This document shows, piece by piece, positions 3,714-58,912 of a stretch of 64,000 nt of DNA (positions are counted from its first letter, which is position 1; each line of letters begins with the position of its first letter). The DNA lies in assembly GCF_001194135.2 (NCBI RefSeq), contig NC_069006.1, positions 24,882,134-24,946,133 on the forward strand. The letters run 5' to 3'. The translations under genes and the position numbers were made by a program. This DNA is from Octopus bimaculoides (Eukaryota). The notes under the pieces were generated by a model, which made no database searches, was not told the DNA's origin, and saw nothing but the letters and a program-made list of their open reading frames with translations.

Positions 3714-4356
3714 GTAAGTAATTCTCTGGACTAAATGGTATCCTATAATCTAACCCCTTCTGATATGGAACCTACGTAAATTCATCTAGATATATCACAG
3801 CAACAGATAGAGAACTTTTTGCAGTTAATGGGGAGGGGGGGGGCAGTAAAAATCTAAGGAATCCACATGCACCTTAGAAGTAAGTTTTTACAGTCACCAA
3901 ATAGTCTGTATTCAGAAAGTTTGCTGCAAACATTTTTGCCGCAGGAAAATTCTCCTCAGGATTTTGGGCCATGGGAAAGTCGACCGCATTGGAAAGTTTG
4001 TGACAAGACAAAAGATGAGTTGCTTCCCTTATTGTTTAAGCCAATAGGAAGGCGTAAGACAGATTCTTAACTCCTTTAAAATTTTCTTTATTCATTTGAC
4101 AAAATTTGTGTTGCAAAAATTTTTGTAGAAATTTCAAAAGAGTTAAGAAATTGTTTTACCTTTTCTTATTGGTTGAGACTTTTATATACCAAGGGAAGAA
4201 ATTCATCTTTTGTCTTGCAGCAAAATTTCCTATGCATCGAGCTTTCCTACGGCCAAAAATCCTGAGGTCAATTTTCCTGCAGCAAACTTTCCCAGAAGCC
4301 AAATAGTCATTCACTAATGTATGTATGTATAATATTTTTTATTGTTTCATTGCAAG

Positions 4357-6245: not shown

Positions 6246-7053
6246 TATGAGGTGCTATCAGAAGGGTCCCAGATTAGTTATGTTTAATAAAAAAATTACT
6301 TATTTACCTAAGTTTTAAACATCGTCTCCTTCGAAATAGTCCCCTTGCGCAGCAATACTCTGATCCCAGTGTTCCTGTCATTTTTGGAATCCGGCCTGGA
6401 AGTCATTTTCTGGAAGCAAGTCAAAGACCTTCTGTTATTCATTCTGGATCTCAACAATGGTGTTTAAACAGCAATCTTTGAGTTGCATTTTCATCTTGAG
6501 GAAGAGATGGGAGTCTGCAGGTGCTAAATCTCGTAAAAAGAGTGAGTGTGGAAACATTGCCACATTTTTTTGTGAGAAACTCACAAGTGAGGAAAGTTTG
6601 GTGACAGGGTGAATCGTTGTAGTCAAGAATCTAATTCTTCAGGCTCCGCAGATCTGGTCGCTTTTGCTCAATGTTCTCCCTCAAATGCTTCAAAACGTTG
6701 TTGAATAACCTCTGACGATCCTCATGCATAAGCTGATGAATTTTCTCCCCATTTCTGGGGGTGATGTTCATGGCAGGTCTTCTAGGGACATTCTTCCGTT
6801 TTTAAAGCACCCATACCACTTGAAACATTGCGTACGACCCACTGCCGTGTAGCTGTAAGCTTGCCAAAGCATGCTCACTATTGCTGTAGCAGGCTTCCCA
6901 AGTTTAATGCAAAATTCCATGTTGGCTTTTTGTTCCAATTTCCTGTCTGTGACAAAAAATAATAGACTACAGCAGACACACCTGATCACAAAAACACAAA
7001 TTTCATAATTTGCAAGGTAAATACAATGATGTCACTTAACAACCCACCTCACG
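6246..7053 (-). mobile_element. Degenerate, internally deleted Tc1/mariner transposon
   Basis: ORF 6768-6989 gives the mariner N-terminal HTH (EQKANMEFCIKLGKPAT...RTQCFKWY..FKNGR.SLED). ORF 6435-6626 gives a decayed YSPDLAP.D..LF..MK motif. Partial TGAGGTG termini. Confidence 0.8.
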
Positions 7054-8972
7054 CTGTAAAACATTGACAAAATCCCTTACTTTCTGCTTTTCCTTTCGCC
7101 TAGTTTCCCTTCTGATATAATACTCTGCTGCCACCATTTTCTCAGTTCCGTTTCTTTGCTTTTAATAGCACTGTCTACCTCCTTGTTCCACCACCATGTC
7201 ACCCTGGGTATGGCTGGGGTTTTGCAACAGCTACAAATTTCACCTGCAGCCCTCAGTATGTTGTCCGGCAGGAACGTCCAACTGTCCTCAAAGTTTTACG
7301 ATCCCAACTCCTCCTGTCTCTCATAAGAAGCTTCCATTAGGATATTTCTAAATTTTTGTTAGCTTTCTGGGTCTTTCAGCTTCCATAACCTCCTTTTCCA
7401 GACTGGTTTCTTTTTGGGAGTCCTAATTCTGAAGTCACTAACAACTAGTAACCGATGTTGGATTGGCCCTCAAAAGAAATAGGAAATAAAAGAAAAAGAA
7501 AAAGAAGAAGAGGAACACAAAGGAGTATCAACACATTGGTCTGGATCTTTATTTACAAAATCAATAGTCATACCAAACAGGGTATAACGCACACTTCAAA
7601 CACAGGTCTTCATCAACATCAGACAATCTGCCAAGAAAATTCCCCTAAAAAGCTGGCAATGAGGAATTCCCGTTTCATTAAAAAAAAAAAAAAATTAAAA
7701 GAAAAGAAAAAAGTAATAATAATAATAATTATAATAATAATAATAAAATAATAGATAAATAAATGTCAATATTATGAGAATATTTTTTGTATTTTTTTTA
7801 GATATTTCAAAATAGCAGCAAGGAGATCCAACAGGATTTTAAGTCATCGATAGATGGCTTATGAATCCTTTTGTTTTGTTTTTGTTAATTGTTTTTCTTT
7901 CTTTCTTCTCTTTGACAGCAACTTGTCTTCTTCANNNNNNNNNNNNNNNNNNNNNNNNNNNNNNNNNNNNNNNNNNNNNNNNNNNNNNNNNNNNNNNNNN
8001 NNNNNNNNNNNNNNNNNNNNNNNNNNNNNNNNNNNNNNNNNNNNNNNNNNNNNNNNNNNNNNNNNNNNNNNNNNNNNNNNNNNNNNNNNNNNNNNNNNNN
8101 NNNNNNNNNNNNNNNNNNNNNNNNNNNNNNNNNNNNNNNNNNNNNNNNNNNNNNNNNNNNNNNNNNNNNNNNNNNNNNNNNNNNNNNNNNNNNNNNNNNN
8201 NNNNNNNNNNNNNNNNNNNNNNNNNNNNNNNNNNNNNNNNNNNNNNNNNNNNNNNNNNNNNNNNNNNNNNNNNNNNNNNNNNNNNNNNNNNNNNNNNNNN
8301 NNNNNNNNNNNNNNNNNNNNNNNNNNNNNNNNNNNNNNNNNNNNNNNNNNNNNNNNNNNNNNNNNNNNNNNNNNNNNNNNNNNNNNNNNNNNNNNNNNNN
8401 NNNNNNNNNNNNNNNNNNNNNNNNNNNNNNNNNNNNNNNNNNNNNNNNNNNNNNNNNNNNNNNNNNNNNNNNNNNNNNNNNNNNNNNNNNNNNNNNNNNN
8501 NNNNNNNNNNNNNNNNNNNNNNNNNNNNNNNNNNNNNNNNNNNNNNNNNNNNNNNNNNNNNNNNNNNNNNNNNNNNNNNNNNNNNNNNNNNNNNNNNNNN
8601 NNNNNNNNNNNNNNNNNNNNNNNNNNNNNNNNNNNNNNNNNNNNNNNNNNNNNNNNNNNNNNNNNNNNNNNNNNNNNNNNNNNNNNNNNNNNNNNNNNNN
8701 NNNNNNNNNNNNNNNNNNNNNNNNNNNNNNNNNNNNNNNNNNNNNNNNNNNNNNNNNNNNNNNNNNNNNNNNNNNNNNNNNNNNNCTGAAAGCAGTTTGT
8801 TAAGAATTGTGCTTCGTTTATTGAGAGGCAAGATGACGATGATGATGAGGATGAAAAATGAAAACGTCCACCAGCCCTCCCCCTGTTATAGGGATGCTGT
8901 GGAGCAAGGATAGCAAGGTGAAATGAAATCAGATAGGAGTGCAGGAGTAAAGAGGTACAGAAACTAAGATTT

Positions 8973-19271: not shown

Positions 19272-19368
19272 CTGTGCTATTTGAGTAGCGATATATACAG
19301 TTTTGCTGAATTGGAACTTTTGACGAAATTCGTAAATGCTTGAAAAGAGTGATTTCCCTTTACAGAAG
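19272..19368 (-). CDS. KSR: KSR kinase exon (V-VIa), FCKGKSLFSSIYEFRQKFQFSKTVYIATQIAQ
   Basis: atttcag acceptor, gtcagt donor, 97 nt, phase 2-0. Confidence 0.93.
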
Positions 19369-19977: not shown

Positions 19978-20190
19978 CTGAAACACAAGAACACATTATG
20001 GAAACTATAAGGAAGCCATGTCATGTATGTGTGTGTGAGAGAGAGAGCATATGCATGTGTGTGTGAGAGAGAGAGAGTGTGTGTATATGTGTGTACAAGA
20101 GAGTGTATGTGTGTGTACGAAGAGTGTGTGTGTGTGTGTATGTATGTAGTTTGTTTGCATAGAAGTGAGATGCAGTGAAGTGCTTCTTAC

Positions 20191-20281
20191 CTCCAATTTG
20201 AAAGCAGACAGTTGTGCTTGGAAGTCTGACGTTGGGTCTATGTTTAGTTTCTTTATAGCTACGTCCCCATGCCAATGGCCT
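20191..20281 (-). CDS. KSR: KSR kinase exon (II-III), GHWHGDVAIKKLNIDPTSDFQAQLSAFKLE
   Basis: attgcag acceptor, gtaaga donor, 91 nt, phase 2-0. Contains WHGDVAIK. Confidence 0.95.
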
Positions 20282-20385
20282 CTGCAATCAGAGAGAGAGG
20301 CTTTAGTTGGTGGCCTTACACAAACAGTCTATAGTCCTTAGCTAAACACAAACACTGCATGTAGTCACACGTGAATACTAACATC

Positions 20386-20561
20386 CATACTAAACACACA
20401 GCATCAGTTGATAGTTAGATACAGTGCATAGGCTCCAGCTACAGACATTGGTATTGTACATAAGTGTTTATACTGAAGTAACGTAATATAGAGTGTGTCT
20501 GTCTGTACCTGGAGCCTAAGCACTGTATCTGACTATCGACTGATGCTGTGTGTTTAGTATG
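20386..20561. other. Long intronic inverted repeat (62-bp arms, 58/62 paired, 52-nt loop)
   Basis: 20386-20447 is the reverse complement of 20500-20561 with 4 mismatches. Confidence 0.92.
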
Positions 20562-20642
20562 CATGTTGTGGTGAGAGAGAGAGAGAGAGAGACTGAGCTG
20601 TGGTATATAAAAGCTGAAGCAGAAACCAAGGTTGATACTTAC

Positions 20643-20734
20643 TTATGTACAATACCAAACCGCCCTATGCCTATTCTGTCTCCAATAGTAATATCTTCAA
20701 AAGGAATATTCCACTCTTTCAGTTGAACAGACAG
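20643..20734 (-). CDS. KSR: KSR kinase exon (subdomain I), LSVQLKEWNIPFEDITIGDRIGIGRFGIVH
   Basis: tttgtag acceptor, gtaagt donor, 92 nt, phase 0-2. Contains EW.IP and the GxGRFG glycine loop. Confidence 0.95.
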
Positions 20735-21563
20735 CTACAAACAACAAGAAAAACACTATGTTGAAAATACACAAAATAATAAAGAAAAAAACAAAAACAC
20801 ATGTCTATCGAAATTTATGAGGTAAGTAATTAATATAATTATAACTTTTTAGAATAATTGACTTCATCGTCAGAGATGAAAATATATTTAATATTTACTT
20901 CATTCACACTAGGTTCATCTGGTTTCCATTTATCTTCACGTGCTGTTGTATTCCAAGGTGTGTACATGGCCCCAAATTGGATTTGAACTAAGGACTTTCA
21001 TCTATAAACTAAAGCCAACAATGGGCCTTCAAATCTCCCCTCTTCATTACGGCACTCTGTCAACTTTGTTAAGGTTATTTCTAGTCTTAGACTCTGTCAA
21101 CTGTTTATATTGACTATTTCCAAACACAGACCCTCACCAATTTCTTCAGGATCAACCTGTTTCCCATAATAAACTAACCACTTGTGACAAATTGTTTTTA
21201 ATGGAAGCAATGAAAGGCCCCATACGGTTGTGTAGCAACAAGACCCTCAGGTAGAACAAGCACCCGGATATATCATAGCTTATCAAGTCTTGTCTGACAA
21301 CGATGATGATCATTTAACATCTGTTTTCCATGTTGGCATGGGTTGGACAGCTTGACAGGAGATGGCGAGGCCGGGGACCACATCAGGTCCCACTGTTTCA
21401 GTTACAGCTGGATGCCCTTACTCATGCCAACCACTTTACAGAGTATACTTGGTACTTTTTACGTGGGACCAGTGCCAGTTCCTTTTTACTTGGTACCAGC
21501 ACCAACTCAAGGGATAATCCTGGAAACCCTGCAAAGTTGCTATAAAACCTTAGATTTACTTAC

Positions 21564-26500: not shown

Positions 26501-26832
26501 TGACTTACAAGTGAATGCCCTCATTTGAAAACAATTGCTACTTCAAATCTGAAGAACGATTATTTGGCACGGGATTACAGGTCACAGATTGAAACCCTTG
26601 AATGAGAAGTTGTTTAAAGGACAAAACACTACAGCTGAAGAGCAGTGGAGTGGTGCACAGATACTACAGTAGAAAAAAACACACCCCCAACTTAGCACAG
26701 AATGGGACTGAACCTGATGTCACATGGTTGCAAAGCAAACTACAGAACCACACAGCCACGCCTGCACCTTGCAATGTATTTGAGAAATTTAAGCATTAAA
26801 CTCTCTCTCTCTCTCTCTCTTTATATATATAT

Positions 26833-26988
26833 CAGAAAAATTGAATGTAGGAGATCCATATTTTTATCCATGTGAGAAAGAGATGTGAGTCATGTCTGAC
26901 ATCTAACTATAACTACAAATATCCGACAGGACTCACATCTCTTTCTCACATGGATAAAAATATGAATCTCCTACATTCAATTTTTCTG
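26833..26988. other. Long intronic inverted repeat (59-bp arms, 58/59 paired, 38-nt spacer)
   Basis: 26833-26891 is the reverse complement of 26930-26988 with 1 mismatch. Confidence 0.92.
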
Positions 26989-27605
26989 CCATATTCTTTC
27001 TCGAGTTCATTGTATTATGGTTTATACTTCCTGCACTGAAGAGTACATTGATATATTAAATTAATTTAATCACGAATTAATATTATCATCATCATTATAT
27101 ATATATTAAAGATTGCTGCTAAAGCAATGCAGAAGGATGTATTAGTATAGGCAATACAGAGTGGAGAGAGTGAGAGAGAAGAGGAAGGAGAGAGTGAGAG
27201 AGAAGAGGAAGGGGAGAGCATAAGAGAGACAGAGAAGGTGAAGAAGATTTAAAGAAATTAGAGAGAGAAAAGTAAAAAGAAAGCTGGAAGGAGGTTTACC
27301 CATTACCAATTGTGTATTCACCCAATTGCAAGTATGCGTTCACCCCAGTATGAAGTGTGTGTTCATCCAATGACTGATAGCGAGTATGTTTCCCTGATAC
27401 CAAGTGTGCGTTTGCCCCAATATGAAATACGTTCACCCAACATCAAGTGTTTTTTTTTTTTGACCACATTTGCAAAAGAGCAAGAGGAAAGAAAAAAATT
27501 GAAAAAAAAAAAAAAAAATTGAAAAAACTGCCAAGTTAAATTTGAACCGGCCGTCATGCCAACCAAATTGCACCCTTAGCATGTGTTGTAGAGTCAACTG
27601 ATTAC

Positions 27606-28282
27606 CTGAGTTGGTGTATTGCCAATGTGGTACCTGTTCATTGACACCAGAATATTCCGATGACGACGACGATGACAACGATGGCAGAAGTTTGGACATG
27701 GCTACCAGAGGCGACTGTATGGGGCCTTTAGCCTGCGGGAGATGCAACAATGCAGCAGGGGGCACAGTCGGAATGCCCGTCACTCTTTTCTTTAACTGAC
27801 CCGAGTGAGACTGGTCGGAGAGCAACAACTTGTCGGCACAATTACGCAAACCTTGGCTGGCATGGAAGTCTTTGTAGTCCTTGTGTTTGCATGGTTTGTC
27901 AGAGGATGTGGAAAAGCATGGAAAACATAAAGTCGAAATAGATCTACAATGCACACATTCAGCGGAACCTAGGTTCAAACAGGGGTACGTATAGAGGCCA
28001 AGCTTTCGTTCATGTTCATACACATGCTGACAAGCACATCTCGATGGTAACGGGATGCTTTCAAGAGGAACACGTTTAAAATGAACATTGTGAAAATTAG
28101 ATTTCTTTGTGCTGCAAACTGGTGACGAGGATGGTGAGGCCCGACCAAAGTGATGGAAGGAGCCATGTCTTGAGGGTTTGTTGACAGCACTCAGATTTGG
28201 CAGGGCCTTACTACTTAGATGGTTAGCAGGGTGGTTAGCATTCATGTTTAACGGATAAGCAGACTGACTACAAAAAACATCA
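27606..28282 (-). CDS. KSR: Large open coding stretch (~225 aa, Cys/His-rich) in frame with KSR CA4; 3' part of a large or alternative exon
   Basis: No stop codon over 677 nt. Higher GC and CpG than the flanking introns. CAG|gtaatc donor in phase 1 matches the phase-1 acceptor at 22942. 28643-27606 totals 1038 nt, a multiple of 3. The 5' end is hidden in the gap. Confidence 0.6.
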
Positions 28283-28522: not shown

Positions 28523-28643
28523 GCAGGAGAAGATGGGGTGGATGAGTTACAAGACGATGTGTTGGAGCCTGAATCCTGGCGTTGGAGTGTAGGAACAGAC
28601 TTCACCAGCTTTATAATGCTTCGCCGAGAGTTTTTGGGAGAAC
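28523..28643 (-). CDS. KSR: KSR Ser/Thr-rich CA4 exon, 5' part, GSPKNSRR...QDSGSNTSSCNSSTPSSP; runs into an N gap
   Basis: tttttctag acceptor, phase 1. DS.SN.SSC.SSTPSSP is the KSR CA4 signature. Confidence 0.88.
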
Positions 28644-31094
28644 CTAGAAAAATAGACATACAGAGGAGTGAGGAAACATTACTTGACATTAGGGGTCAGG
28701 AAACATAAGAATGACATTAACCCAGATTAAAAAATCAAAAACAACAACAAATTGGTTTTAGGCTTCTTTCTTTCCTTTTTTTTTTTTTTAGTTTTCTGCC
28801 ATGATATTACACAACAAACAGACAACAATGAACAGTGATTTCTGATACAGAACAACATACCATAGAGAAAACCACAAAACAAATATAACAACAACAACAA
28901 CAGCAAATTATGATTGCAAAATGAAAACCATTGAAGACAATTGGGGGGTGGAGGGAGAAGGGCAAAGGTGAAATATTTAAACAAACAAATTATTTTAACT
29001 ATGTTGTCTGGAACTATTTTTGGCTAGCTTTTAATATTAAATTTCAAATCACATCTACCGAGAGGAGAAACTAGTGACAAAGTCTTATGTAGGTCAGCAG
29101 TTCTTAACCAAGGTAAATTAGGGAGCTACGGTGGTATTTTAGGGCCCTATGAAAATGTTTCGCTAATCAGCAAGATTTCTTTCTTTAACACTTAACATAG
29201 TCCAACATGTTTCTGGCCATTGAAACATGTTCTCTCAGAACCTACACCAGTGAACCTACACAAGTACACACACGTGTGACAAACAAAATAAGTGTTTTGA
29301 AACATAGAATGGCTATGGAGATCCACAAGAATAAAATAGGATGCAGGTACTCGATGTTACAAGAAAATAGTAGCTAAATCACAATTAAATAACGCCATTA
29401 TCTTATAAAAAGAAGAGCAAATTGATAATGCAGTCCATGATACGCTACGACTAAAAATTAAAAAAAAAAAGATATAGATGGTCATGGCTGGAATGCCTTT
29501 GATCATAAGGAGGTGTACCAGATCATGGCTGGCCTGGAGCTAAAAACAAACAACAAAACTAACCAAGAAACTATAGACATGAACAATTTCAATGTTTAAT
29601 GAGACCTGGCTAATTAGTCAGAAATTAATGATGAATTAATTAGTAGATTGAATTGATTAGATGCTAAAACGTGACAGCTAGAACCCCCCCCCCCACACAC
29701 ACCTCTGCTGCTTCTCCACAAATTTGCAGAGTATACATCTGCACGTGACCCTGCTGAACATACCTCCATGCAGTCATGATGGAACAGAAAAGTCAGCAAA
29801 CAGCACCTTTTCTCTACACAATTTTTGAAGTCTCAATCTTGAAATATTGTAACACCAGGTAAAAGGACTAAGCAGCAACCTGTGTTTTTAAATAACTTAC
29901 ATTAAGGAAAAGAACTGAAAGATATTTGTAAGAGACATGTGAGAGGATGGGACATGCCGGACATGAGGTCACCACAGAACACATGCAACAGTAGAACATT
30001 TGATGCAACTCAAAGACCAGGTTTGAACTAGGAAGACTCGAAATGGATGGAATGGTAACAAATTTAGAAAATACACTACAGAAATAAGACAGCAACATTA
30101 TAAGTAAGCTTGGATGAGAAACAGCGAGGGACAGGAACATTCAACAAGTCTCCAACGGACATATAAAAGATATATATATGTACAGGACAACATAAACAAA
30201 ACAGTATGAGGAGACTGGTGAAAGATGAGAAGAGAGAGTGAAAATGAAAACAGTACATAACATACATTGAACTAGATGACAAAAAGGCAAAGATCATTGC
30301 ACCCAAATATGATTGCTAAATGCTGTTTGATAGACGAGGACAAATAGAAACACAAAGACATTGATATGTCATGAACAGAACCAGAACATAAGTAACAACA
30401 ACAAAGAAATACAAACAAAAAACAAGCAAAATAACTTTAAGAAATATCAAATTGTTGCTTAACAAATAATCAAGAGCAATATTTTGTATTGTTTTAGCTT
30501 CTTGTAAAATATAAACATTGCTCAACCATTTTAAGAGCAGAATTTCTTTTCATTTGACCCTTTAACGTTCAGATTACTCAATCAAATGTCATGATCATTT
30601 ATTCACATTGTTTTGAATCAACCAGGCATTATCTTGTAGCTTTCAGATTTCAATAATGTGATTGTTTGGACATAAAACCACTCGAATATTCAGGCCAGAG
30701 ATGGACTATTTTCAATGGTAATGGGTTCTTTTAGTGAGAAAGGAAGAGCAGTGCCTTTGACTGTTTGTATGCCTTCTGACACTGGTGGGATGGAGGGAGA
30801 GATGACTGCCAATTGGAGGTCAAACCCAAATGCTTGGAACAGAGGCACCAAAGCACACAAGGTTCAGGCAGTGGTGTTAAACCGAAGAAGAGATGAAGTC
30901 TACAAACCAATTCCTTACAGTGCTTCACTGTAATATAATAGCTACAATGAGACATTATACCAACATTGGTTAGAACCGAAGACATTTTTTGTAGGTTTAG
31001 AGCCTGTCAAACCATCCTTTTTATGGCAACTCATTGGATGTGTTAAGTAATAAACTATTCAATATGTTTTTTTGTGTTATGTTTCAGTACGCAA

Positions 31095-31690
31095 TCGGGG
31101 TTCTAATCAAACCAGCCCCTATTTATTGTGAGATATGCAGTCCCGAAAGTTTAGGAATTTAAAGTATGTAAGTCAGTTGGCCCTCATTTATTGAGAGAGA
31201 TAAAATCTCTAAGATTTAGAAATTAAAAGCATGGTTAGTTGATCCCTGTTTAAAGGGAGGCATAAAGCAAGATTATATTTAGTTTAGTCTAAGACATGTG
31301 GTTGGTTAGTCCCTATTTAAGAGGAGACATTTTATGCAAGATTAAATTTAGAAATATAAAATGTAGTTAGTTGGCCCCTACATATTGATAGGCATCCCTA
31401 AAATATAGGAATCAAAGCATGATTAGCTGACCCCTATTTAAAGGGAGATACATTATGCAACATTGTATTTTGTTTAGCTTAAAATGTAGTTAGTCCTTAT
31501 TTACTGGGAGACATCCCTAAAATTTAGGAATAAAATGCAGGCAATTAATCAGCCCCTGTATATATCAGGAGACATCAGGAAGATTTAGAAATTTAAAACT
31601 TTGTTAGTTGGTGCCAACTTTTTGAGAAATATCCCTAAAATTTAGGAATTAAAAATACAATTGGTCAGTTATTTGTTTGAAGACATTAAA
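31095..31690. repeat. Degenerate minisatellite, about 10 units of ~55-80 bp
   Basis: Recurring ttagttggcccctattta..gggagacatccctaaaatttaggaa motif. Confidence 0.75.
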
Positions 31691-32216
31691 GAGTTTGTTG
31701 AGAGACTGGAAAGCTGTACCAAGATGGTCAGGTGATTGGTCAGAGAATTTTTTTCTCGAACATAGATGTTGTTTACCTGTTTGGTGATGAATTGTTCAGT
31801 CTGTGTATGTAGTTGCTTCTCTATAAATACAAAAATTTACAAAATACAACCACCATACAAAATGCCTCGAGCTATTAGAATGACCGCTAAGTGAGGGGAG
31901 GGAGTAAAGATGTCCCTAGTATTCGCATAAGTGCAGCAGTACATACATACAGAAGCGTGCCTGCACACCCACGTACATGTGCCTACATATATATACTCAT
32001 CCACCCTCACTTGAAACACACACAAAAAAAATAATATATATATACCTGCATACACGCTCACACACTCGCACAAATGATGGCGTGGGTTCCCACTCCGGCA
32101 TCCGAAACTCGGAGTTTTATCATGGCTACCAAATAATTGTCACATATTATTTACAGATAAATTCCTCTATTTCCATAATATCAAGGTCTCTTTCTTTCTT
32201 TTGTTGTTTTTTTTAT

Positions 32217-32258
<42 letters not shown>

Positions 32259-32640
32259 TTTTACTTGTACCAATTATTAGACTGTCGCTATGCTGAGGCA
32301 CCGCCTTGAAGAACTTTTGCGAAGCGAATTGATCCCAGAACTCATTGTCAGGCTCCTTTTGCTGAACTGCAAAGTTATGGGGGTTGTAAACAAACCAACA
32401 CCGGTTGCCAAGCAGTGGTGGTGAACACACGCGCGCGCGCTTTCGCATGCACACACATGACGGGTGTCTTTCAGTTTCCTTCTATCGAATTCACTCCTAT
32501 GGCTTTTGGCCGGCCTGGAACTCGTGTGATTGGGAAGCAAACTTCTTACTTCACAACCACACATAATGCATGTGTATATATGTGTATATATATATATAAA
32601 ACGGTGTATAAAGGTAACATAAGTGGCATATCTAACTCAC

Positions 32641-32705
32641 CATACTTTAAAGGAAGGCTGCAGGTATTGGGAGCTCTATTGGCACAATCGCGATGGCATT
32701 TATAC
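32641..32705 (-). CDS. KSR: KSR C1 domain exon, YKCHRDCANRAPNTCSLPLKY
   Basis: atttccag acceptor, gtgagt donor, 65 nt, phase 2-1. HxxC...C completes the C1 domain. Confidence 0.92.
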
Positions 32706-32988
32706 CTGGAAATAATAAACAAATAACTTGAACTGACAAACAAAACGTTTTAAAAAGTTACTTTTTCTTCTTTCCTTTATAAATTAGCTATGGCCCCATG
32801 AGGAACAGAGCTGATGGCCTTTTGCTGGTTGGAATATTTTAGCTGCAAGTTTCATCTTGTGACACAGCCTCAAAGAGAAAAACCATTTTATAAATAGTTT
32901 GTAACACAGCATTACATCGTGACAAGTTACTAAATGATTGTAACACAGTGCAATATAGTACATGTTACAAAGACCTTGTAACACAATA

Positions 32989-33195
32989 CAGTAATCCCTT
33001 GATTATCACGTGTGTTACATTCCCCTACCCCCATAGGTGAAAATCTGTGAAGTAGAAACAGTACTGTACTGTATATTGTTTTTGTTATTATTTTTGTAAT
33101 TTGTATATATTTATTTTATAATAAATGCAAAACAACACCACGGAGGAATCGACGTAAGCTTAAATAATAAACTGCGATATGGCAAGGGGTTACTG
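32989..33195. mobile_element. Pogo/Tigger-type MITE with TA target-site duplication
   Basis: TA|CAGTAATCCCTTG ... CAAGGGGTTACTG|TA. Confidence 0.7.
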
Positions 33196-33229
33196 TATAG
33201 AGACAAGGTATAGAGTTTGTAACAATACA

Positions 33230-33520
33230 GGAATATTTGGATCATGATCATAAGGTCAAGAGTTCAAATACTGGTGGCGTGTTGTGTCCTTGAGCAAGAC
33301 ACTTTATTTCTTGTTGCTCCAGTCCACTCAGCTGGCAAAAATGAATTGTACCTGTAATTCAAAGAGGCCAGCCTTGTTACATTCTGCGCTTTGCCGAATC
33401 TCCCCGAGAATTACATTAAGCGTAGATTTATCTGTGGAATACTCAATCACTTGGACATCAATTTCAGGAGCAGGCTGTTCCGTTGATTGGATCAACTGGG
33501 ACTGGAACACTCAGCCAGTT
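33230..33520 (+). mobile_element. SINE, family 3 (ccttgagcaagacactttattt...ccagtccactcagctg core); copies at ~22580, 50380, 51275, 59660, 63800
   Basis: Dispersed repeat with a conserved central core. Confidence 0.65.
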
Positions 33521-33744
33521 ACATATCGACAGAGTTTGTGACAGTATGATACAACGATAACTAATCCACGGCATGTGACACGGTTTGCGATAGGCTCCTT
33601 TAGCAATACTTTGTGACAGTTCAATATGAGGTAGGTGTGGTGGCTTCCAGAAGTTTGTGACACAACCCAGTAGAGAGACAACTCAACTTGTTTGTGGCAC
33701 AGAACTAATCAAAGAGAAGGATAGAAAAAACATGCAACACTTAC

Positions 33745-33825
33745 CTACAATCTTTACATATTTTTCCAAATAAAACATGCTTCCTACAATAGTCACAGAT
33801 CTCAAACATAGGTTTAATGATAAAT
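33745..33825 (-). CDS. KSR: KSR C1 domain exon, FIIKPMFEICDYCRKHVLFGKICKDC
   Basis: ctatttcag acceptor, gtaagt donor, 81 nt, phase 2-2. Carries the CxxC...CxxC zinc ligands. Confidence 0.92.
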
Positions 33826-34366
33826 CTGAAATAGATTAAAGGAAAGTATGGGATTAATGTGGAAGACAGTAAGTTTTGTCATTCAGAAACACACAAAGAC
33901 TGTCAACTTCACTTTAAACCTCTTTTTCTAAAATGGTGTGTCATAATTGTCATTACTTGAAACTGTAACCTGTTCACAAGTGTAAAATATTGCTACATCT
34001 GAAACTTCTGTGATGTAGGCACAGGAGTGACTATGTGGTAAGTAGCTTGCTTATCAACCACATGGTTCCAGGTTCAGTCCCACTGCATGGCACCTGTGGC
34101 AAGTGGCTTCTACTATAGCCTCGGGCCGACCAAAGCCTTGTGAGTGGATTTGGTAGATGGAAACTGAAAGAAACAGATTCTCATCTTTTTACAAGTGAAT
34201 GAACACAAGGTCTAACTGCAGTTTGGCAACAAGGACCACAAGAAGGGGTTTGAAGTGTTTTATGTATTGAAATTTTTATTGTTAAGTATTCAGTTGTCAC
34301 TGTTAATTTGAAAATGGGAAAACGAATGGTAATAGATATCATATTATAGATTTGGGATAAGTACCA

Positions 34367-34400
<34 letters not shown>

Positions 34401-35159
34401 CATGTGAGATAAAAGTGAGAGAAAGAGAGAGAGAGAGAGAGGAATGCACGTGTGTACTTTGGCCATATGTTACACAGCAAACATGAAACGGTTATTTCAA
34501 TGGCCCAGCAAATCAAAATGACCTTAGAGATATGGACATAGGTGAGCATGATGCACTAAACTTTATTACAGGCAAGATAGCTTTTCAATTTTCTTTTTCT
34601 TTTTTTTTTCAATAAGACAGCAAAAGAAAATTAAAAAAAAAACACAGGCAACAACAACGTTTGTTGATATTTTTTTTATATAAACCTATTTTAAGCTCAA
34701 AATTAAACACACAACAGCTGATGATTTAAATCATCATCATCTAGTGTCAGTTTTCTATATTACGTAAGTTGCACAGTTTGACAGGACCCAATGAGTCAGA
34801 GAACTTCACTGTGCTGCAATGTTTGGAATATTTTCTACAGCTGGATGCCCTTCCTAGTGCCAACCACTTTACAGAGTGGCACTGGGCACATACTTCATGG
34901 CACCAGCACCTGTGGGGTCACCAGAAAATTTGCAGGACTAAAGATTCACCTTCACCGACTGAAAAATTATATAGGGCAGGTGCCCTATATAATCTTGGAA
35001 CGAAATGGTTTTGATTTACTGTCGGGTGACTTTTGGCCAACCCTGTATAAAGCTTTCCTGTTATAAGCCCTGAGTTACTCCTAAGGTTGAATAAAAAAAA
35101 GTGGGAATGTGTATCGAATACGATGCATGGACACCGGGGGAAATTAGTCTTCTGTATCC

Positions 35160-57082: not shown

Positions 57083-57713
57083 TCAAATAGGTCAACAATG
57101 CAAGGTTGATGCATGCTGTTATTTTGATCATTCCAAGCTACCTTTTATCATTTACTTGTTTCAGTCATCAAACTGTGGCCAAGCTGGGGCACCACTTTGA
57201 GGAATTTTGTTTTTTTAATCAAATCAGTTGAGCCCAGTAGTCTTGTTTTTTTAAAAAGCCTGGTACTTATACTGTTGGTCTCTTTTGCTGAACCACTAAG
57301 TTACAGGGACATAAACACACCATTACCCGTTGTCAAGAGGTAGTGGGCTGACAAACACAGACAAAGACCACCCCTGCTATATATATAAATATATATAAGG
57401 CGTGGGTGTGTGGTAAGAAGCTTGCTACCCAACCACATTGCTCTGGGTTCAGTCCTACTGTGTGACACCTTGGAATGTGTCTTCCACTATAGACGGAAAG
57501 TGAAAAAAGCCCATTGTATATATGTGTGTGTCTGTGTTTGTCCCTCCCGCACCATCGCTTGACAACCGATGTTGGTGTGTTTATATCCCTGTAACTTAGC
57601 AGTTCAGCAAAAGAGACTGATAGAATAAGTACTAGGCTTATAAGTACTGTGGCTGATTTCTTCAACTAAAGGCGGTGCTCCAACATGGCTGCAGTCAAAT
57701 GACTGAAACAAGA

Positions 57714-57744
<31 letters not shown>

Positions 57745-58552
57745 CACACAGAGAGGCTTCTTTCAGTTTCCATCACAAGGCTAAAGTAGAAGATCCTTGC
57801 CCAAGGTTCCACACAGTGGGACTGAACCCAAAACCATGCAGTTGGGGAAGCAAGCTTTTTACCACACATCCACACCCACATCTACCTTTACTCTAATTCT
57901 CTAACATCTTTGAAGTTGCAACTGTTTTTATCTCACCATATTATCTCATTTATTAAAAAAAAAAAAAGAAAAACACAAGTGGCCAATAAGTGCTGATTTT
58001 CAGGATGACAGTTTTAATTAATCTGGAGCCACTGATTGGAGTGGGGGAGTGGTGGTGGTGATGGTGGGGATGTCGGCACGTCATGCTGCACTTCACTACG
58101 AATAGTGAGGCTAACGAGATACTGTTTTAAAAACAAACTTCAGATTATCTCGAGAGAAATAAAAGTTTTTTTTTTTTTGCGAAGATGCCATCCAACATAA
58201 GAAACAATAATTAAGTCAGCACTAATATTAATGTACCAAACATTTAATGAGCTAATTTGAAATAATTATGCAGAGAAAACGAGGAAAAAAAACAACTTTA
58301 GCAATTCATCATTGTTTTAATGTCTACTTTTCTATCCTTGCATGGGTCAGATGGAATTTGTTGAGGCAGATTTTCCTTGGACAGATGCCCAACAATCAAG
58401 GTAATATTTCCTCAAGTCTGGACTTGCTTCTGTGGAGAAGTTGGTTAGAAAAGACAGCACCCGAGCGAAAGTGGTTGGGAAGCAAGCTTCTTGCCACTCA
58501 GCCACTCTGGCCACTGCCTTAAAAGAAAAGAAAAAAAAAACACAAATAGCTC

Positions 58553-58912
58553 CCGGAGTGGCTGAGTGGTAAGAAGCTTGCTTCCCAAGCATCTTGGTTT
58601 GGGTTTCAGTCCCACTGTGTGGCACCTTGGGCAAGTGTCTTCTACTTTAGATTTGGGTCAACCAAAGCCTTGCAAGTGGATTTAGTAGACTGAAACTGAA
58701 AGAAGCCCATCATATATGTGTGTGTGTCCACCATTGCTTGACAACTGATGTCGGTGTGTTTACATCCCCATAATTAAAGTGGTTTGGCACAAGAGACCGA
58801 TAGAATAAGTACCAGGCTTACAAAGAATAAGTTCTGGGGTCAATTTGTTAAACTAGAAGGTGGTGCTCCAGCATGGCCACAGTCAAATGACTGAAACAAG
58901 TAAAAGAATAAA
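58553..58912 (+). mobile_element. Near full-length SINE, family 1 (forward)
   Basis: A-box-like TGGCTGAGTGG at 58559-58569, B-box-like TTCAGTCCC, then the family body and an A-rich tail. Confidence 0.8.

Follow-up and report, generated by a model that had tools for sequence, protein, structure and literature searches.

An intron of the kinase suppressor of Ras (KSR) gene of Octopus bimaculoides contains a perfect 18-nt reverse complement of the end of the preceding exon together with its splice donor. We consider it probable, at roughly 60 %, that this 18-mer arose recently and in one lineage, as an inverted copy of exon end plus donor made by a template switch, and represents a neutral by-product. 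The initial annotation of this DNA had proposed the same element as a candidate structure for ADAR editing or splice control. The window is the whole stretch of DNA that was analysed, i.e. 64,000 nt, and positions are counted from its first letter (Table 1). Throughout, E denotes the copy at the exon end and E' the copy within the intron.

The gene is KSR, as seen from both its motif and its domain architecture. The window exons map onto O. sinensis XP_029651429.1, a protein with the Pfam domains SAM_KSR1_N, SAM_KSR1, C1 and Pkinase, and are 100 % identical to A0A0L8HAC8 in the kinase region. Matching proteins are KSR2-like and belong to O. bimaculoides, O. sinensis, O. vulgaris and Argonauta, the orthologues in O. 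sinensis, O. vulgaris and Argonauta hians being annotated as ‘kinase suppressor of Ras 2-like’; the gene ranges over ~167 kb in O. sinensis and ~155 kb in O. vulgaris. To define exon and intron borders, protein P0064 of O. bimaculoides (A0A0L8HAC8) was mapped onto the window as an exact spliced match; its first 213 residues correspond to window positions 28245-27607 with 100 % identity. A 90-aa query across three exons gave short non-cephalopod ORF fragments only; a longer query found the Octopus proteins. Exact look-ups of the window ORFs over the intron, and of P0064, returned no record, and a 735-aa chimera of stop-free translations of the intron and its flanks had no match in the protein collection.

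Table 1. Features of the KSR intron region and of further inverted repeats in the window (a slash marks the exon-intron border)
Feature	Position	Strand	Details
Exon A	20643..20734	-	KSR2-like kinase-domain exon; encodes LSVQLKEWNIPFEDITIGDRIGIGRFGIVHK (Gly-rich loop GIGRFG + IVHK); ends in phase 2 (AA/)
Intron	20282..20642	-	361 nt, GTAAGT...TTGCAG; spliced mapping
Exon B	20191..20281	-	(K)GHWHGDVAIKKLNIDPTSDFQAQLSAFKLE, starts (K)GHWHGDVAIKK; spliced mapping
E	20641..20658	-	last 16 nt of exon A + GT of 5' splice site (UUGGUAUUGUACAUAA/GU); source copy of the inverted repeat
E'	20448..20465	-	ACUUAUGUACAAUACCAA in RNA; exact complement of E; abuts arm B
Arm A	20500..20567	-	5' hairpin arm in pre-mRNA; inverted repeat I1, 68 nt, 93 %
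Arm B	20380..20447	-	3' hairpin arm in pre-mRNA; 5 mismatches to arm A
Hairpin loop	20448..20499	-	52 nt; 3'-most 18 nt in RNA = E'
Spacer between E and 5' arm	20568..20640	-	73 nt, with (CU)n tract = (GA)11 on + strand
Local donor hairpin	20630..20661	-	exon end + intron +1 to +13 (GGUUUGGUAUUGUAC-AUAA-GUAAGUAUCAACC); MFE, -9.6 kcal/mol
Paired exon adenosines	20653; 20648; 20646; 20644; 20643	-	I>V; synonymous; H>R; K>E; K>R, respectively
Second hairpin in KSR gene	26827-26994		other intron; 76-nt arms, 92 %; (CT)n/(TA)n tract on one side
Isolated inverted repeat	2771-2788/2950-2967		perfect, sharp-edged; 18 nt, 161 nt apart; non-coding, random flanks
Isolated inverted repeat	46632-46648/46672-46688		perfect, sharp-edged; 17 nt, 23 nt apart; non-coding, random flanks

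The anatomy described in the initial annotation was borne out when 20100-21000 was read on both strands. The sequence TTGGTATTGTACATAAGT is found at 20448-20465 on the plus strand and at 20641-20658 on the minus strand, 175 nt apart, and the claimed exact reverse complementarity holds at 18 of 18 positions. Translation and spliced mapping likewise agree with the claim that its target is the end of the KSR Gly-loop exon, i.e. the last 16 nt and the GT of the donor, the 3' end of exon A reading ...CAT AA/GTAAGT. As had also been noted, the intronic copy begins at the very first base of the 52-nt hairpin loop, 0 nt from the arm. The match ends abruptly on both sides, flank identity around the pair being at the random level (2/25 and 4/25); no gapped extension of the 18 nt was found, and no microhomology is visible at the junctions. 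The 64,000-nt window holds no third copy of the 18-mer, even when up to 3 mismatches are allowed.

The intronic hairpin next to E' had been given as 62 bp long, which is close, the measured arms being 68 nt with 63/68 positions paired (93 %). Two of the five mismatches have T on arm B versus C on arm A (plus strand), and one lies at a CpG. The hairpin folds with -110.4 kcal/mol and the region with z = -7.1, and it certainly can form in the pre-mRNA, where it represents a generic ADAR substrate. For the 34 loop nucleotides beyond E', no source was found elsewhere in the window. A microRNA precursor was considered and rejected, since there is no Rfam match near threshold: the best one, mir-4536, reaches 24 bits versus a gathering score of 76 and lies on the antisense strand; the 68-bp stem and 52-nt loop also far exceed canonical precursor size.

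Inverted arms of this length in a repeat-rich genome bring to mind a foldback or MITE-type transposon, of which the 18-mer would be a part or an insertion scar. The 68-nt terminal arms, the (GA)n tract on one flank and the (CT)n/(TA)n tract beside the second hairpin of the gene are in keeping with such an element; however, there is no target-site duplication at the arm ends, and neither a second copy nor a fragment of the hairpin was found in the 64 kb. Moreover, a transposon would not contain an 18-nt match to the end of a neighbouring conserved exon, and could account for the hairpin but not for E', which makes this origin very improbable. Still less credible is an artefact of assembly or sequencing, i.e. 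a chimeric inverted join. The window is indeed a gap-rich draft with 11 runs of N, but the nearest gap is ~4.8 kb away (25511), the arms differ at 5 positions within an internally coherent structure, and an inverted insertion of 18 nt is atypical of assembler error.

How surprising the 18-mer is depends on the background against which it is set. The initial annotation held an exact match of this kind to be very unlikely by chance, which is correct against random sequence but does not stand against the local inverted-repeat density of the genome itself. In Markov-1 simulations of the window, exact inverted repeats of at least 14 nt with both copies inside 600 nt numbered ~0.4 and reached 17 nt at most, whereas the window itself holds 16 (low complexity removed); therefore, this genome makes local inverted repeats in quantity. 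Two of the repeats in the window are isolated, perfect and sharp-edged like the KSR 18-mer and lie in non-coding sequence (Table 1), and there are at least 4 further long local inverted repeats or hairpins. In random 100-nt segments, a reverse-complement match of at least 18 nt within 1.5 kb, low complexity set aside, occurs at a frequency of 3.75 %.

Exon A stands alone among the 19 mapped KSR exons of the window in having such a match. The others reach 8-11 nt, and intron sequence complementary to exons is no general feature of the gene. Local repeats other than transposons amount to ~2 % per 100-nt segment as a rough estimate. At that rate, one match among 19 exons is unsurprising, provided that exons serve as sources in the same way as other DNA.

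The age of the element can be judged by comparison with other cephalopods. The intron position is common to O. bimaculoides, Argonauta and two distant orthologous loci from ENA assemblies (L001 and L002). At the Argonauta hians locus (L003), exons A to E encode the same protein sequence as in O. bimaculoides (100 % identity), and no nucleotide differs over the final 26 nt of exon A and the GTAAGT that follows; the nucleotides of the exon end are also identical in a Logan transcript of a third cephalopod (L004), the consensus of which encodes unedited GIVHKG. The orthologous intron of A. hians is 510 nt long, cannot be aligned with that of the octopus, and is made up of CA-rich sequence and pieces of tRNA-like SINEs. 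A hairpin is missing from it, and complementarity to the exon end peaks at a 10-nt match of 90 %; in L001 and L002, complementarity to the exon end does not go beyond shuffle expectation. On the question of conservation raised in the initial annotation, the 18-mer is absent from the A. hians intron despite the identical exon end, and from those of L001 and L002; for Argonauta this is the outcome that the annotation itself had named as speaking against its proposal.

Because the exon end is identical in O. bimaculoides, A. hians and the L004 transcript, the exon copy is the ancestral one and the intronic copy derived. The comparison of these loci suggests that the intronic 18-mer is a derived, lineage-restricted element. 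Scans of metagenomes with a 25-mer of the exon end plus donor and with a 23-mer of the hairpin arm were both without match.

Conservation of the exon end was tried as evidence for an RNA structure and rejected. The six codons for R-F-G-I-V-H are identical in three cephalopods, i.e. at six consecutive synonymous sites. Across the same three species, 40 % of the comparable KSR codons are identical overall, and longer identical runs occur in exon D, so that the exon end is not exceptional within its gene. Since Argonauta has the same conservation without E', it cannot be credited to E'.

The form of the octopus repeat, i.e. a perfect reverse-complement copy of 18 nt with abrupt edges and random flanks so close to its source, is that of a template switch. 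Template switching makes perfect stems (PMC8794818; PMC7954356) and new miRNA hairpins (PMC10710096) in single events. Like these mutations, the octopus 18-mer is perfect and sharp-edged, lies less than 200 nt from its source and instantly creates a potential RNA stem; it also appears young and lineage-restricted, and has similar isolated repeats for company in the window. In contrast to the published cases, the octopus event is read from the form of the repeat rather than reconstructed on a phylogeny, and what was copied is the end of a coding exon together with its splice donor. The outgroup Argonauta is without the element, but its whole intron is unalignable. The lack of visible microhomology at the junctions speaks against a template switch.

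Considering the form of the repeat, a replication or repair template switch (templated insertion), or an MMBIR-type event, has probably written the 18-mer into the intron in one step. Its landing site would have been the stem-loop junction of the intronic palindrome, which was perhaps a site of breakage or stalling. Alternatively, the arm and the 18-mer could have been laid down together in a single event as a two-piece patchwork. That the copy sits exactly at the stem-loop junction of a 68-bp palindrome, whether older than the copy or made along with it, suggests either such a patchwork or repair at the palindrome. A single inverted duplication of arm plus exon end was also considered; it is excluded by the arrangement of the pieces, as E' lies on the loop side of its arm, whereas a single inverted copy would place it on the outer side. 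Regardless of the exact route, the element would probably be without selected function.

The perfection of the copy says nothing either way. The hairpin arms differ at 5/68 positions, and therefore ~0.6 changes would be expected in 18 nt, so that about half of such neutral copies would still be perfect; this calculation assumes that E' is as old as the hairpin and that only E' drifts, the exon being constrained. Against the neutral reading, the target of the copy is a striking one, i.e. the end of the ATP-binding-loop exon and its donor, in a neural signalling scaffold of a heavily recoding animal.

Whatever its origin, the 18-mer has properties at the RNA level. It lies in the same pre-mRNA as the exon segment to which it is complementary, as does an editing-site complementary sequence (ECS), and the E:E' duplex has an energy of -24.3 kcal/mol with 18/18 pairing over exon positions -16 to -1 plus GU. 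The duplex covers the donor from -16 to +2 only, leaving +3 to +6 (AAGU) unpaired, and it competes with the local donor hairpin (Table 1). In nascent RNA that extends up to E', before arm B has been made, the fold with E:E' reaches -54.4 kcal/mol versus -55.1 kcal/mol for the MFE; because forcing it costs only 0.7 kcal/mol, the E:E' helix can form transiently during transcription. For the exon end, no exonic partner beyond shuffled expectation was found in the mRNA.

The long stem will then form once its 3' arm emerges directly after E'. The initial annotation was right that exon pairing and hairpin together have the topology of a pseudoknot: on geometric grounds, both helices at once would make a pseudoknot of the H type, one stem having 18 bp and the other 68 bp, in which linkers of 34 and 73 nt would have to wrap 1.6 and ~6 helical turns, respectively. 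E' and the 3' arm form one continuous strand, and the two helices could thus stack into a nicked helix of ~86 bp. A generic pseudoknot penalty is ~10 kcal/mol plus ~0.1 per looped base. With penalties of this kind, the local donor hairpin at -9.6 kcal/mol would bring more than E:E' does on balance.

The hairpin, together with a transient E:E' helix, could lead to some incidental editing of exon adenosines at a low level, or to the donor being slightly masked, and no regulatory device is needed for either. A mutational origin could go together with an unselected effect, the double-stranded RNA leading to non-adaptive exon editing, to hyper-editing of the hairpin and maybe to a little donor masking. 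In favour are the high stability of the hairpin (-110 kcal/mol; z = -7), its presence in the sense pre-mRNA, and an E:E' pairing that is within thermodynamic reach while the RNA is transcribed. The very heavy editing of dsRNA in coleoid neural tissue also speaks for such an effect. The pseudoknot nevertheless imposes the same topological limits here as on any selected structure, a duplex of 18 bp is barely long enough for ADAR, and the intron may be gone before the helix matters. On balance, we regard incidental editing or masking of this kind as a realistic but rather unlikely outcome.

The reading closest to the initial annotation goes further and takes E' as a combined ECS and donor-site complementary sequence (DCS) under selection, with the 68-bp hairpin recruiting ADAR like an editing inducer element (EIE); KSR would then be recoded after its GxGxxG loop (I>V, H>R or K>R/E), and/or use of the donor would be tuned. 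We judge this improbable. The perfect 18-bp duplex is possible and near-isoenergetic with the MFE in nascent RNA, and E' abuts arm B, so that stacking of the two helices could offer a long substrate. In contrast, the element is missing from Argonauta, where the exon is identical, and from the two distant orthologous loci, which fails to show the conservation of an ECS among relatives sharing the exon. The hairpin itself, i.e. a long stable stem of 68-nt arms adjoining the would-be editing duplex, has the structure of an EIE, but evolutionary conservation is lacking here too, the Argonauta intron having no hairpin. Known ECS duplexes are imperfect and conserved, whereas the 18-mer is perfect and sharp-edged like the two non-coding repeats. 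Coexistence of both helices would further demand, from the geometry, a pseudoknot with linkers wrapping several turns, at a predicted net gain below that of the local donor hairpin.

Regarding the possible edits, the I>V, H>R and K>R sites listed in the initial annotation are present in the paired exon segment, but the list omitted the adenosines at 20644 (K>E) and 20648 (synonymous). The sequence around position 20643 is AAG, and a G on the 3' side is favourable. Other KSR orthologues have Arg at the K position, reading VHRG or VYRG (P0009, P0002 and L002), and K>R would therefore be tolerated; both points are in favour of a selected site. On the other side, the transcript L004 encodes the unedited GIVHKG, and KSR editing was not found in the literature and supplements examined: none of the literature examined combines octopus, RNA editing and KSR, and ‘KSR’ is absent from the examined supplements of Shoshan 2021 and Alon 2015.

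Comparison with established editing substrates shows both likenesses and differences. As in the R/G and Q/R structures of GluA2 (GRIA2) with their intronic ECS, the octopus duplex of exon and intron has a 5' splice site nearby, the R/G site of GluA2 being 2 nt from the donor. The mammalian structures, however, are nested and free of pseudoknots, imperfect with internal loops, and deeply conserved; the octopus duplex is perfect and lineage-specific, and can coexist with the long stem only as a pseudoknot.

The precedent of Drosophila paralytic, which had been cited in the initial annotation, is real: its structure combines an ECS with a donor-site complementary sequence and with a tertiary pseudoknot that involves a hairpin loop (PMC4299485). 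Similarly, the octopus intronic sequence can pair with an exon end and donor, with a hairpin loop taking part in the pseudoknot. In paralytic, though, there are several distinct elements with imperfect pairing, which are conserved among Drosophila and whose role knock-in mutations have proven (PMC4299485 and work cited there), in contrast to a single perfect 18-mer that would fill both roles, covers the donor from -16 to +2 only and is not found in Argonauta. In mammals, a long stable stem beside a short editing duplex raises editing (PMC5654063, PMC3479170), and the octopus arrangement, in which a short duplex adjoins a long stem, resembles the two-part substrate proposed for efficient editing (PMC5654063). 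Together with paralytic, these long stems are the precedents for a selected substrate, but all of these known structures are imperfect, conserved and backed by experiment.

Like coleoid recoding sites (PMC8382921 and earlier surveys), the KSR exon end belongs to a neural-expressed coleoid gene and has conserved synonymous sites at its flank. Unlike them, it has no KSR site in the literature examined to point to, and its synonymous conservation is unexceptional and shared by Argonauta, which lacks E'. It is tempting to speculate that one template-switch event in the Octopus lineage created a working ECS/DCS beside an ADAR-recruiting hairpin, by which neural KSR would be recoded or its splicing tuned; we hold this to be a doubtful prospect, of the same low order as selection on the 18-mer.

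If the neutral reading is right, the 18-mer is nothing unusual, since the mutational process behind it is common and the genome is rich in repeats and palindromes. Its main value is then as a caution, as an exact intronic complement of an exon is not by itself evidence for an editing structure. Should the exon adenosines be edited through the 18-mer, a template-switch mutation would be linked to the birth of ADAR substrates, and a new coleoid recoding site would have been caught in the act of arising. Such editing would provide an RNA-level variant within the nucleotide-binding loop of a MAPK scaffold, and template switching could then be part of the reason why coleoids have come to possess recoding sites by the tens of thousands.

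The last six full codons of exon A (20645-20662), a KSR2-like kinase-domain exon, show no synonymous differences between O. bimaculoides, Argonauta hians and a Logan transcript of a third cephalopod. Across the same three sequences, codon identity is 106/267 overall, and exon D (19272-19368) harbours runs of four and eight synonymously identical codons (FRQK-FQFSKTVY). The end of exon A can also pair with intron bases 1-13, which encloses the 5' splice site in a 13-bp hairpin (20630-20661, minus strand; -9.6 kcal/mol); the intron half of this hairpin is conserved in Argonauta only as far as GTAAGT.

When the octopus intron carrying the 18-nt inverted copy of the exon A end and donor was compared with its A. 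hians orthologue, no alignment was possible anywhere along the intron. The A. hians intron contains a tandem pair of tRNA-like SINE fragments (ggtagagtgctggactgaagatctaaaggt...ggttcaatccc; positions 29600-29760 of the A. hians KSR locus L003), followed by around 300 nt of CA-rich low-complexity sequence.

A second long hairpin was located in another intron of KSR (see table), with (CT)11 tt (TA)6 on one flank, and gtggt(GA)11 flanks the hairpin that presents the 18-nt copy (20380-20567). Comparison of these two hairpins showed no sequence similarity between them.

Regarding the gene model, the 213 N-terminal residues of the O. bimaculoides KSR protein (UniProt A0A0L8HAC8) correspond to a single ORF read through 27607-28245 (minus strand) and are absent from the KSR proteins of O. 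sinensis, O. vulgaris and Argonauta, the upstream exons of which map elsewhere, i.e. to 28561-42327 of the window. This N-terminal stretch probably reflects an erroneous gene model in the draft annotation. In the protein searches, a 560-aa query recovered the Octopus KSR proteins, while a 90-aa query contained exactly in them missed them, with every match shorter than 160 aa; negative results from short queries in these searches are therefore unreliable. Downstream of the KSR 3' end, transposon-protein-like ORF fragments were observed at 6771-7295 (minus strand); one resembles the N-terminal helix-turn-helix of mariner-type proteins (MEFCIKLGKPATAIV...CFKWYGCFKNG), another resembles part of a reverse transcriptase.

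The window contains further long local inverted repeats. The ones located between 55 and 60 kb resemble copies of a dispersed repeat paired in inverted orientation, and fragments of that repeat recur throughout the window.

Inverted repeats detected in the window
Feature	Coordinates	Arms	Spacing or loop
Long hairpin, other KSR intron	26827-26902 / 26919-26994	76 nt, 92 % complementary	16 nt
Long local inverted repeat	3935-4286	105 nt, 78 %	
Long local inverted repeat	57256-57639	90 nt, 83 %	
Long local inverted repeat	57776-58655	101 nt, 84 %	
Perfect inverted repeat, isolated, sharp-edged, non-coding	2771-2788 / 2950-2967	18 nt	161 nt
Perfect inverted repeat, isolated, sharp-edged, non-coding	46632-46648 / 46672-46688	17 nt	23 nt

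The two perfect inverted repeats have flanks whose identity is at the random level, and the 18-nt copy in the KSR intron is the same in form. The occurrence of two such non-coding repeats of this shape suggests that short template-switch events are frequent in the O. bimaculoides genome.
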